Assembly (NCBI GenBank): GCA_037447605.1
Contig: CM074807.1
Location: 2,552,327 to 2,616,326, forward strand
Length of the DNA: 64,000 bases
Direction of reading: 5' to 3'
DNA from: Zygnema circumcarinatum SAG 698-1b
Taxonomy: Eukaryota; Plantae; Zygnematophyceae
Shown piece by piece: positions 45,221 through 49,069 of the stretch. The position numbers were made by a program, and so were the translations under genes. The notes under the pieces are model-generated. The model searched no databases. It was given only the letters and a program-made list of their open reading frames with translations, and was not told where the DNA came from. Every line of letters starts with the position of its first letter. The first letter of the stretch is position 1.

Positions 45221-45377
45221 GGGGGTGTCAGACTTAAAAAATTTCAGTACGCGTGTTCGTAAGTTTGACATCAGAACGAGTACTCCAGTATAATCGCGAT
45301 CCTCCTGCGGCGGAGTACTTTCGTAACCTTTTTTTTCGTAACGCTTTTCGTAAGATTTTGTTAAGTCTGACACCCTC
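45221..45377. mobile_element. MITE-like element 2, TIR G(G/A)GGGTGTCAGACTTAA, TA flanks
   Basis: GGGGGTGTCAGACTTAA at 45221 and TTAAGTCTGACACCCTC ending at 45377 (16/17 match); TA on both sides; internal TTCGTA motifs. Confidence 0.8.
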
Positions 45378-45738
45378 TATTGTTGGAGTCACATATAGCG
45401 TGCGGGTGGGCGGGCGTCGCGGAACGAACTTGCAGTTGGAGAATGTAGGGTTGAATTTGGGGCGGGCGGGAATGGGCGCGTGGGCGAGCGGTGAAGGGGA
45501 GAGAGGGAAAGGAAGCGGCGCAGTTTCAGAGTTAAGGGAGCACCCATGCATTCATGTATGCATGCATGCATGCCCTGGGAGGGCCCAGGCTATGTAGGGT
45601 TTGGAAGTCTACACCTTTTCAACTTTGATGCACTCTTATGAAGTGAAGTTGCGCATAAACTTTGATGATTCTGGCGTCGCTTTCGTAATAGTCAACGCCG
45701 ATGCGCAGTCACAGGCATTCGTGGAAACAGCAGAAGCC

Positions 45739-47492
45739 ATGAAGCGCATGTCCATGCCAGCATCCTTAACATCATCATCATCATCATCATTCGTTCCATT
45801 AAAAGCAGCAGTTTTATCTCCTCGGGAATCATCTCTATCGCCATCAACATCACCAACCTTACCCGCATTCAGATCATCGTCATCGTCTTTTCGGAGCCCT
45901 TTCTTAAGGGCTCGATTTGCAAAAACCATGGCCCATTTTGGTCAAAAAATTCTTAAAGAAAAAACGGCGAAATATTTGCCGGATTTCACTGTGAGGTCTT
46001 TGAACACGTTCCTTCCGTACGAAGATTTCAAGCAATCCGTGAAGTGCTTGGACAGCAGGCGTCTTGGAAAACAGGTACGCGTGTTGTGCTGCTTGAACTT
46101 CAACGGAAGTTTGCAGTTTTTTTAGGGTTAGGGTTTCGCCCATACCCTTTTCTTTCTCCTACTTTTTATCGACTCCGGACATCCCTCGGCAAACCTTGAC
46201 ACACTTCTTGCCGAAAACCTTATAATGTGTTAACAAATAGCGAAATCCTGAAAAATCGAATACATCACTTAACCCTAAAAATCGGAGATATGGAGGACCC
46301 TAAAGACTGAGGAAGTGTCAGATGGAGCAGAGTGCAGTTCTGCTGCTCTGCAGCAAAACTGAAAACGGACATGGAACCGTGCAGAGCAGCGCGTAGAGGC
46401 TCGACAAATTCTGAATGTCATCACGGAGGCTTCTAAGAGCAACGCATGGCGCAACAGCCCTGCGGTCAGTGCTCCTCTCTCTCTGTCTCTGTCTCTGTCT
46501 GTCTGTCTGTCTGGTCTCTCTCTCCCTTTTCCCTCTCCTTTCCCTCCTTTCTCCAATTGTCTAGTCCCCCGATCCCTCTCCCCCTCCCTTCCTCGCTTTC
46601 TTCTCTCTCTCTCTCGCTCTCTGTCCCTCCATTTTTTTTCTCTCTTCCGCTCTTTCTCCCTCTCCCGCCCACTCATTCTACACTTCCCTCTCCCTTCCTA
46701 TTCCCTACATCCTCGCTCTCCCTGCGAACCCTTAACAGTCTCTCGATCCTTCCCCTTCCCCTTCTCTCTCTCCCTCTACTTTCTTCCCCTCCCTCCTTTC
46801 GCCTGCGGTTCCCTCGCCTTCCTTCCTCCTCTCTCCTCCCTCTTTTCTGCTTTTCTCTATATACCTCCCACTCCCTCTCCTCCCCTCCCCTCCCCTCCCC
46901 TCCCCAAATCTCCCCCCTCCGAGCCCCACCAAAACAAACTACTTTTGGATCTCACCATTTCTTTGGTGATCCACGGCCTTATGAAATCACAAAACGAACT
47001 GAAACAGTAACAGAGAACGTGGAACTGGGCCTGCAGGTCAGAATGTGGCGAGGCCACCCCCTGGCTCTCATGCTCTACTACAACGAGTGTTTGCAAGAAT
47101 GGAAAAATCGCGGATTTCGAAACATTCTCCTCCTCCCTTCTGAAGTAGAGGAGAAGGACATCTCTATGCCCCCATGGCTGGGTACGTCACAGTCCACATT
47201 TTCTCAGAGTTGATCCATTTCTCCCCCCTTTTCTTCTTTTTTAATAAAATTTGATTGTATTCTTACCACGCGGCACAGGCTGGCATGATATGATGTGTGA
47301 TCTGATGCATGTGCAGGAGATGAGCGTCTACATGCTTCACATCGCTCGAATCTGCTCCGTAAAGATCCGTTGTACTATGCGCAGTTTGGCTGGAAGGAGC
47401 CTCCAGATTTGCCTTACGTCTGGCCCGTGCCCTTGAATCTCCCCCCTGCAAAGCAAGGCAAGGCGCTGCAAAAAGATGAAGAGAAGAAGTGA
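45739..47492 (+). CDS. Pyrimidine-dimer DNA glycosylase / endonuclease V-like protein (MSMEG_6728-type) with N-terminal organellar presequence
   Basis: Exons 45739-46074, 46390-46464, 47037-47181, 47317-47492 give 243 aa. Core LNTFLPYEDFKQSVKCLDSRRLGKQRVEARQIL...WRNSPAVRMWRGH...EWKNRGFRN...MPPWLGDERLHASHRSNLLRKDPLYY...DLPYVWP matches the recalled MQTFLPY..D.RRLGKQRVE..HPA..MW.G..PPWLG...H.SH.S.L.RKDP..Y..LPYVWP pattern. The first 87 aa are Ser/Pro/Arg-rich. Confidence 0.85.
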
Positions 47493-48110
47493 GCGGGTTC
47501 ACGGAAATGTCCTGAAACGTAAACAAGTGTACGGCACGTTTTTTTCCTGTATTTGTAATTTTTTAGATATATATGGTCCCTCCCTCCGTCCCTCATTGAC
47601 TATAAGATAGGCACTCATATGAGCAGAGGCTTTGTGTAGAACAGGAACTGAGAGGCGAGCAGAGGCCATTTGTGCAAAGTATCTCCTCGACTTTGTGTTT
47701 TGGATGCGCCGTGTTCTCTCCTTTTCCTCTCCCTCTCCCACTTTCCCCTTTCCTTTCTCTCTCCCTACCAAAATTGCTACCTTCCAATATCCAATACACG
47801 GCGAATCCTAATCTTGAAACCTCGCTGTCTCCCAGCCAAGTGTCGATCATCAGGTTCGACTGAATTTGGATTTTTGAATGATCGGCGGCTTCACCTTCGC
47901 AAACCCTCCCTCTCTCTCTCTCGCTTTCTCTCTGTCTGTCTGTCTGGTCTCTCTCTCTGTCTCTCTCTCTCTCTCTCTCCCTCCATTTTTTTTCTCTTCC
48001 GCTCTTTTTCCCTCTCCCGCCCACTCATTCTGCGCTTCCTCTCCCTTCCTATTCCTTACATCCGCGCTCTCCCTGCGAACCCTTAACATTCTCTCGATTT
48101 TCTCCCTTTC
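46490..48110 (+). repeat. Two direct copies of a pyrimidine-rich dispersed repeat (46490-46760 in intron 2; 47930-48110 downstream)
   Basis: Shared complex core CCCTCCATTTTTTTT...CTCCCGCCCACTCATTCT...CCCTTCCTATTCC.TACATCC.CGCTCTCCCTGCGAACCCTTAACA.TCTCTCGAT, roughly 125 bp at high identity, preceded by (CTGT)n-CTGG-TCTC in both copies. Confidence 0.85.
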
Positions 48111-49069
48111 CTCTCCATCTCCCTCTTCCTCTCCTCTCTCTCTCCCAATGATATTTTCTGAATTCTGCTATAAACATTTTTCCATGTTTCAGCCATTGTT
48201 TTGAATCATGAATCTGAATCTGAATCATTTTCGGAATTATGCAATGAGAATATTCCATGCTTTAGCTATTTTTTAAACTATCCTCTGAAAATCTTGCATG
48301 TTTGAGCTATTTTCGAAATTTCAAGTCCTTGTTCAGTGTTGGGCTGAAAAACGCTTATGTGTCCATTCTTTTCTTGGATTGTAAGCTGAAAAAAGAACAC
48401 GAAACGCCTAAAATATGAACCATTTTCAGAGCAGAGATGAAGAAACGGGCTGAACGGCTGCCGTCCTGAAAGTCGTCCTCCATGTTAATTTACATTACAA
48501 AAAAATGAAAGTTATGAGTTTCAATTATTGAGAAGGGTTGGCTGCCTGAAAGTCCGCCATGTTTACGCCAATGTTTGAAGTGTGCGCTGCCATTTGGTAC
48601 TGAACTGAACCACGCGTTCAAGTGCAGCCTTTCCTGCCCTCACTCACTCTGAATGGGCGGAGAGGCGTCCCCGCCCTGCCCGTGTTGCGGCTTCGGCTCC
48701 ACCGCGAGGCCGAGAGGGAAGGCAGGAAGCCGTGAACCAAAGCGAGCCGGCAATTCGGCATACGCCGCAGGTCCTGGGCCTCGCCACCAAATGGGGCCAA
48801 GATCGTAAATAATAAGTAGAAAGTAATAGCACCAGCAATAGAGGGGGGCGCTAAAATTAGCGGAGGGAGGGGCGGAGGGAGGGAAGGCAGAGGGGAGGCG
48901 GAGCGGGGAGGAAGGGGAGGGAAGGGAGAGAGATACCGACTGGGGGAGGGGGAAATCGCGGATCGGAACGGGTCGGAAAGAACGGAACGGAACGAAACGG
49001 CGGAGGCCTCAAGAGTCGTCCGTACGGCTAGCTCATGGCCGGGAGGGGGAAGGAGGAGGAGCAGGCGCC

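Follow-up and report, generated by a model that had tools for sequence, protein, structure and literature searches.

Among enzymes of the Pyr_excise family (PF03013, pyrimidine dimer DNA glycosylases), the mechanistic reference is T4 endonuclease V (T4 endoV, or DenV), in which the α-amine of the N-terminal threonine, encoded by the second codon, forms an imine with C1′ beside a catalytic glutamate (PMC3285167). By their titles, two papers cited in PMC12499884 (references 64 and 66) found activity eradicated by methylation of the amino terminus and catalysis affected by where the α-NH2 group lies. The gene considered here encodes a member of the same family behind an N-terminal leader. It lies in a 64,000-nucleotide stretch of Zygnema circumcarinatum SAG 698-1b (assembly GCA_037447605.1, contig CM074807.1, positions 2,552,327 to 2,616,326 of the forward strand), referred to below as the window, whose own numbering is used throughout. 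The coding sequence of 732 nucleotides (nt) is divided among four exons (Table 1) and yields 243 amino acids (aa), which comprise an 87-aa leader and a MSMEG_6728-family / Pyr_excise domain.

A preliminary description of the locus had held that DenV-type enzymes in general need a free α-amine at this end of the protein, which has been shown for T4 endoV alone (PMC3285167; references 64–67 of PMC12499884). The conservation reported below is best explained by a Pyr_excise-family enzyme with a candidate targeting leader, whose putative processing site coincides with the N-terminus of the family. More specifically, the protein is probably, in our cautious judgement, an organelle-targeted precursor of an enzyme of bacterial origin, which would be cut at [I/V]-R-[A/S/G]↓Leu to free the α-amine and would be inactive beforehand. 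Under this mechanism, a streptophyte ancestor would have gained the gene once from bacteria, and a disordered, basic, acid-poor leader would direct the protein to an organelle. A processing peptidase would then cut the junction after import, leaving Leu88 as the mature first residue where the bacterial proteins have Met1. On the model of T4 endoV, the new α-amino group and the invariant Glu115 would both be needed for glycosylase and apurinic/apyrimidinic (AP) lyase chemistry, of which the uncleaved precursor would be incapable.

The junction of leader and domain

The first residue of the domain is Leu88. From exon 1 alone, residues 89–112 match positions 2–25 of NF038085, the NCBIfam profile of the MSMEG_6728 family, with an E-value of 2e-6, so that Leu88 takes profile position 1; the motif LNTFLPY is encoded at 46000–46020. 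In BLASTP comparisons of the spliced protein with fetched relatives, query residue 88 falls on subject residue 1 in 6/6 bacterial top hits, at 58–62% identity over 136–147 aa. Profile and BLASTP together bear out the earlier proposal that Leu88 aligns with Met1 of the bacterial MQTFLPY start. The exon pieces, each scored separately, reach 27.9, 20.3 and 42.7 bits at NF038085 positions 2–25, 49–77 and 113–148, exon 2 being too short, where the curated cut-off of 100 bits applies to the whole 149-position model. The streptophyte orthologues score 65.6–72.7 bits against PF03013, over profile positions 2 to 75 of 81. The Zygnema protein retains every one of the 16 invariant and 20 nearly invariant columns in the family alignment. 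Among them is the glutamate numbered 28 in the family and 115 here, which is invariant in 36/36 aligned members and lies within helix 19–36 of a bacterial model. Judged by its position in this first long helix of the model, Glu115 would be the counterpart of the catalytic glutamate of T4 endoV.

An exhaustive search with exon 4 returned 806 relatives, and a search with the Marchantia paleacea protein returned more than 6,400; word-index protein searches with exon 1 in its 174-aa frame and exon 3 in its 255-aa frame gave no matches. Nearly all relatives are short prokaryotic or phage proteins beginning M-Q-T-F-L-P-Y, and two of those fetched are named MSMEG_6728 family by NCBI. In prokaryotic members this motif stands at the extreme N-terminus, and in 170 fetched proteins an LD..RL..Q motif lies exactly 16 residues from the first residue. 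Most bacterial and phage proteins with annotated extensions still have methionine as the first residue of the motif, in line with mis-called starts. Three extended proteins have a leucine there (P0194, P0201 and P0225); the cluster of P0194 includes shorter 128-aa forms, P0225 starts with a residue other than methionine, and all three are likely to be alternative starts or partial calls.

The junction was compared in 13 streptophyte proteins of at least six lineages, namely the window protein and 12 eukaryotic database entries, anchored on the domain start. Their leaders, 31–96 aa long, cannot be aligned with one another except at the last residues, where every leader ends in [I/V]-R-[A/S/G] and L-[N/Q]-T-F-L-P-[Y/F] follows at once (13/13). 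Position −3 is isoleucine in nine proteins and valine in four, position −2 is arginine in 13/13, and position −1 is alanine in six, serine in four and glycine in three. Leucine occupies position +1 without exception (13/13). Further upstream, position −4 holds glutamine in eight proteins, glutamate in three, and once each threonine and glycine (Q/E in 11/13), and position −5 holds leucine, phenylalanine or isoleucine in 10/13, the others being serine, methionine and glycine (hydrophobic in 11/13). A recognisable processing motif thus stands at the boundary of leader and domain in each of the 13. Conservation of the junction among orthologues had been set in advance as a test of the cleavage hypothesis, and the hypothesis survived it.

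The codons of the junction differ between alga and liverwort (GTG AGG TCT TTG in Zygnema, ATT CGA GCT CTG in Marchantia), which places the constraint on the protein. The same difference led to rejection of the idea that the conserved Arg and Leu codons are the relic of a bacterial ribosome-binding site (RBS) and TTG start. The tripeptide fits the stromal pattern (V/I)-x-(A/C)↓A, except for the leucine at +1, and fits the mitochondrial patterns with arginine at −2 or −3 equally well; the motif is therefore no guide to which organelle is meant. The aligned sequences best support a cut at Leu88 or no more than one residue away from it.

The leader itself has a composition to match. Residues 1–87 include 21 serines, 6 threonines, 14 lysines or arginines and 3 acidic residues (E30, E74 and D82), which amount to a net charge of +11, with 31% Ser plus Thr and 3% acidic residues, and the C-terminal end reads T-V-R-S. 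Composition and coordinates agree with the Ser-rich, nearly acid-free leader of 87 aa, followed directly by Leu88, that had been described at the outset. The streptophyte leaders are all basic (net +3 to +11, with 0–8% acidic residues) and rich in Ser, Thr, Ala, Pro and Arg. In the AlphaFold model of the Marchantia paleacea precursor, the leader has a predicted local distance difference test score (pLDDT) of 52–65 and forms neither helix nor strand; confidence falls to its minimum (<50) at residues 34–39, shortly ahead of the junction (residue 42), beyond which the domain is modelled confidently. Absent from prokaryotic homologues, basic, acid-poor, hydroxyl-rich and unstructured, the leader has the features of a targeting peptide and looks like a cleavable presequence. 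Its composition and helical-moment figures do not discriminate between plastid and mitochondrial targeting. The destination may be the plastid, the mitochondrion or both, dual targeting being possible.

The catalytic amino terminus and rival readings

The PF03013 match starts at profile position 1 in T4 DenV and in the family alike. For the model of a bacterial member (pLDDT 92.9), the best structural matches are four T4 endoV entries, 1ENK, 1ENI, 1ENJ and 2END, with Z 7.6–8.0, root-mean-square deviations (rmsd) of 3.7–3.9 and 111–113 aligned residues; the next unrelated hit has Z 5.5. In the best match (Z 8.0, rmsd 3.7, 111 aligned), model residues 1..127 correspond to residues 2..138 of the T4 chain, and the alignment opens with residue 1 on T4 residue 2. 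The likeness to the T4 endoV fold is of moderate strength, with Foldseek E-values of about 1. Motif position, the Pfam match and the model lend indirect support to the view that the domain N-terminus matters for the function of the family. A T4 endoV-like action with a catalytic amino terminus is plausible in this subfamily by analogy.

Several points weigh against cleavage to a catalytic Leu88. A search of PDB sequences with the family profile did not find T4 endoV, and alignment of the family with T4 DenV by hhalign gave a probability of 1.4%. The Foldseek E-values to T4 endoV are not significant, and a usable score was obtained only after VIA realignment; moreover, a Z of 8 falls within the range where helical folds can match by arrangement alone. 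Equivalence of the N-termini is approximate, given that only the end residues of the alignment are known, and the glutamate is residue 23 in T4 and 28 in the family. The searched literature contained no biochemistry or assay of the MSMEG_6728 subfamily. Import and cleavage are candidate steps read from the sequence, with no proteomic N-terminus found, and the junction peptide was not found in Physcomitrella N-terminome supplements. The precursor's true start is uncertain, given an in-frame ATG at 45628. In addition, the 13 proteins form one clade, so that the 13/13 counts are raised by common descent and do not stand for 13 independent events. The clade nevertheless takes in zygnematophyte-type algae, liverworts, a moss and ferns, among which the adjoining leader positions diverged freely over the same time. 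NepR appeared as a PDB sequence match and was set aside as a chance hit (E 0.25).

Leucine is also unusual as the first residue of a stromal protein. In Physcomitrella plastids, approximately 42% of mature N-termini are acetylated, mostly on alanine or serine, and N-terminal trimming is common (PMC11450134). Given that acetylation would block an α-amine nucleophile, an invariant leucine where alanine or serine is usual may avoid the block. In its fullest form, which we regard as possible but tentative, the proposal describes a location-gated zymogen, that is, an ultraviolet (UV)-dimer glycosylase that would be without its catalytic amino terminus until the import cut. The site would have been fixed for about half a billion years, nicking would be confined to plastid and/or mitochondrial genomes, base excision would be independent of light, and leucine at +1 would avert N-acetylation.

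The conservation of [I/V]-R-[A/S/G] can equally reflect a role in the folded protein. The tripeptide would then be part of the mature enzyme, which would be cut upstream (for example before [I/V], compare T4 Thr2-Arg3) or not at all, and catalysis would proceed without the Leu88 α-amine, for example through the side chain of Lys111, or the protein would be no lyase. The preferences at positions −5 and −4 are in keeping with this, as is the lack of a direct sequence-search link from the subfamily to T4 endoV. The nearly invariant Lys24 (Lys111 in Zygnema), with conservation of 90% or more and a place one helical turn from the invariant glutamate, could be an alternative nucleophile, which counts against an α-amine as well, yet N, M or G stands in its place in several members. 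Bacterial proteins have nothing before Met1, and three added residues would shift the N-terminus from the conserved pocket; the residues just before the junction are, moreover, the least confident of the Marchantia model and unstructured. On this evidence a mature protein that retains the tripeptide is unlikely.

The phage protein P0098 bears on the same question. This protein of 244 aa is encoded (L004 2001-2735) on a phage-like metagenome contig, among many short genes of one strand. Its in-frame N-terminal extension of 72 aa favors retention of added residues, but a short form could also be made. An RBS-like AAGGAG precedes the first ATG, and an RBS-like GAGGAA lies 10 nt before the internal ATG (MQTFMPL). 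The locus could encode a fusion protein, a nested short form or both, and offers a natural test of how well the family tolerates N-terminal fusions.

The mature end could instead lie one residue further in. The mitochondrial processing peptidase (MPP) would cut after Arg-x, ICP55 would trim the leucine, and the working N-terminus would be Asn89, the equivalent of bacterial residue 2. After the first cut in plant (Arabidopsis) and yeast mitochondria, ICP55 takes off an N-terminal F, Y, I or L (PMC6460961), which speaks against a final Leu88. The plant −3R pattern R-x-[F/Y/L]↓[S/A/N] is matched by R-A/S/G-L with N/Q-T after it, and the invariant leucine would be explained as a trimming signal. 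Through the Pfam profile, Met1 of T4 corresponds to Met1 of the family, so the catalytic T4 Thr2 falls on family residue 2. However, bacterial members start with M-Q or M-N, and methionine aminopeptidase is not known to trim such starts; the bacterial enzyme therefore works with residue 1 in place. The exchange of methionine for leucine is also conservative, as expected if the side chain stays in the mature protein, and mitochondrial localisation is a conjecture from sequence. Trimming to Asn89 is unlikely.

If cleavage at Leu88 to a catalytic α-amine is correct, the gene offers algae, bryophytes and ferns a candidate means, open to test, of removing UV dimers from organelle DNA in the dark, independently of photolyase. 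An ordinary import peptidase would double as the activating protease of an amino-terminus-nucleophile enzyme, at a site that streptophytes would have kept in place to the residue. Should that reading be wrong, an explanation would still be needed for the conserved I/V-R-A/S/G-L junction.

Transcript, start codon and gene structure

The gene is expressed and spliced as modelled. Public runs from this alga include a 960-nt complementary DNA (cDNA) contig in which the four exons are joined exactly at their predicted GT..AG borders; the same joints recur in three further runs. Unspliced intron-1 contigs are also present at lower depth.

Table 1. Features of the gene, in window positions
Feature	Position	Strand	Basis or remark
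Four-exon gene	45739-46074, 46390-46464, 47037-47181, 47317-47492	+	Gene model and cDNA contigs
Minimum 5′ untranslated region	45484-45738	+	Spliced cDNA contigs
Exon 1	45739-46074	+	ATG 45739; GT donor after 46074; cDNA joint 46074>46390
Leader, 87 codons, candidate organelle-targeting presequence	45739-45999	+	Composition; no counterpart in bacterial homologues
Internal ATG, Met64	45928-45930	+	Strong context AAAACCATGG; possible alternative start
Val85-Arg86-Ser87 (GTG AGG TCT), positions −3 to −1, candidate processing-site determinant	45991-45999	+	13/13 conservation
Leu88 (TTG), proposed mature N-terminus	46000-46002	+	Aligned with bacterial Met1
Domain start LNTFLPY...RLGKQ, first 25 residues	46000-46074	+	NF038085 profile positions 2-25
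Exon 2, 25 codons, with invariant Glu115 (46396-46398)	46390-46464	+	cDNA joints; family alignment; model helix 19-36
Exon 3 (VRMWRG...PPWLG)	47037-47181	+	PF03013 24.6 bits on exon 3 alone (gathering cut-off 23); cDNA joints
Exon 4 with stop codon (DERLHASHRSNLLRKDP...YVWP)	47317-47492	+	NF038085 positions 113-148, E 5e-11; cDNA joint

Spliced cDNA contigs begin at 45484, 45485 and 45504, and one begins at 45360. The mRNA thus extends at least 255 nt upstream of ATG 45739, where the contig ends do not give the true 5′ end of the transcript. Eleven ATGs precede 45739 in the mRNA, including an (ATGC)n cluster at 45546–45572. Only that at 45628 is in frame, and it would add 37 residues, six of them acidic. 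A pyrimidine stands at −3 in 10/11 of the upstream ATGs, and the exception, 45592 (G at −3), runs into a stop codon at once; ATG 45739, with G at −3 and A at +4, is therefore the first start in good context and most likely the start of the precursor. The upstream ATGs may reflect translational control by upstream open reading frames, or a real transcript start downstream of the contig ends.

No other start context in exon 1 is as good as that of the ATG at 45928 (AAAACCATGGC, with A at −3 and G at +4), which had already been called strong. The second isoform that had been proposed from it fares less well, with context alone in its favor and no methionine at the equivalent place in any of the streptophyte orthologues compared. 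It is very unlikely that the leader is no organelle address and forms a disordered tail with another role on a nuclear or cytosolic protein, possibly one begun at Met64: the context of 45928 suits such a protein, as does the Lys-rich, less presequence-like run of the last 25 leader residues (AKTMAHFGQKILKEKTAKYLPDF), which hold two of the leader's three acidic residues, and organelle placement is itself a proposal, but 13/13 leaders are basic, acid-poor and free in length and sequence, as targeting peptides are, both Met64 and the Lys-rich stretch are unconserved in every orthologue, and three in-frame ATGs at 45739–45754, two with G at −3, come before 45928.

Start-codon uncertainty has a parallel in Physcomitrium patens, in which two forms are annotated, P0160 (212 aa, leader 58 aa) and P0272 (250 aa, leader 96 aa); the start of the leader is all that distinguishes them, and in the longer form it is an acidic stretch. 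Directly upstream of the Zygnema gene, at 45300–45382, is a high-copy repeat (TTCGTAAC-type repeats) with very high word depth in 4/4 runs. Many contigs leave this repeat into unrelated sequence, and it breaks transcript assemblies.

A minor cDNA form, seen in one run (X2) at a depth below that of the normal joint, skips exon 2 (75 nt, in frame; joint 46071-47034). The 25 residues dropped include the invariant Glu115, the presumed catalytic acid, so the product would be inactive. Intron 1 contains plant-type telomere-like repeats (TTTAGGGTTAGGGTTT) and their complement (CCCTAAA), approximately 150 nt apart (46118–46136 and 46271–46300). Intron 2 holds a CT-rich element of approximately 300 nt (46475–46775), with a second copy just 3′ of the gene (47908–48126) at 75–84% identity. 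This is a dispersed or locally duplicated low-complexity repeat, partly covered by low-depth cDNA contigs.

Origin and comparison with known systems

The 12 eukaryotic entries come from Marchantia paleacea and M. polymorpha, Riccia sorocarpa and R. fluitans, Physcomitrium patens (two forms), Adiantum nelumboides (two genes), one contig close to fern sequences, and Spirogloea muscicola (three models); a truncated Mesotaenium model was also found. A quick maximum-likelihood tree was built with Mesotaenium but without the third Spirogloea model or the second Physcomitrium form. In it, the window protein forms a single group with 11 entries inside bacterial sequences, with a value of 96 in the Shimodaira–Hasegawa-like approximate likelihood ratio test (SH-aLRT). 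Spirogloea is nearest to the window protein, at 64–67% identity. In Marchantia polymorpha the gene has a single intron, at PPWFG^D, which matches the place of intron 3 in Zygnema (PPWLG^D). The single tree group inside bacteria and the shared intron position indicate one acquisition from bacteria in a streptophyte ancestor, followed by vertical descent.

In Spirogloea muscicola, two family genes (P0029 and P0168) lie approximately 1.6 kb apart on the same strand (scaffold s154, 244796-249685), with a third on a separate scaffold. The adjoining same-strand pair points to a tandem duplication. P0029 (351 aa) and P0203 (345 aa) are much longer than the other proteins, and the extra length of P0029 is a low-complexity C-terminal tail.

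The searched literature gave no description of these plant genes, including Mp2g12340 and PHYPA_016582, or of Pyr_excise in plants, and a pyrimidine-dimer glycosylase is not in the list of Yue et al. 2012. The analysis gives a name, as one horizontally acquired family, to "hypothetical proteins" that include Marchantia Mp2g12340, Physcomitrium PHYPA_016582 and the Riccia, Adiantum and Spirogloea entries.

With T4 endoV and the chlorovirus enzyme cv-pdg, the family shares the match to PF03013 from position 1, a glutamate in the first long helix, and conserved sequence at the very N-terminus. Unlike T4 endoV, the family gives no direct sequence match to it, and its first residue is methionine or leucine, where T4 endoV has a threonine exposed by removal of methionine. 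The C-terminal block HxSHRSNLLRKDP...YVWP is likewise specific to the MSMEG_6728 subfamily. The viral enzymes are without the leader that the streptophyte proteins carry; in an engineered cv-pdg, the nuclear signal was placed at the C-terminus (PMC5768739).

With bacterial MSMEG_6728 proteins, the identity given above extends across the domain from residue 1, the conserved columns are kept, and the streptophyte clade nests among them. Unlike these bacterial proteins, which appear uncharacterised, the streptophyte genes have introns, a translated leader and leucine in place of the initiator methionine.

For the proposed activation, the parallel is with the N-terminal nucleophile (Ntn) hydrolases and proteasome beta subunits, in which removal of a propeptide exposes the catalytic N-terminal residue. 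The logic would be the same, that of an inactive precursor whose amino terminus is held in a peptide bond until the cut. Those proteins, however, are processed by themselves or on assembly, whereas here a general import peptidase would tie activation to location. The proposed origin has a counterpart in the land-plant DNA-3-methyladenine glycosylase (MAG), reportedly a bacterial glycosylase gene gained horizontally near the origin of land plants. MAG differs in fold and family from the enzyme described here, and resembles it as a bacterial repair glycosylase gene that entered the plant lineage.

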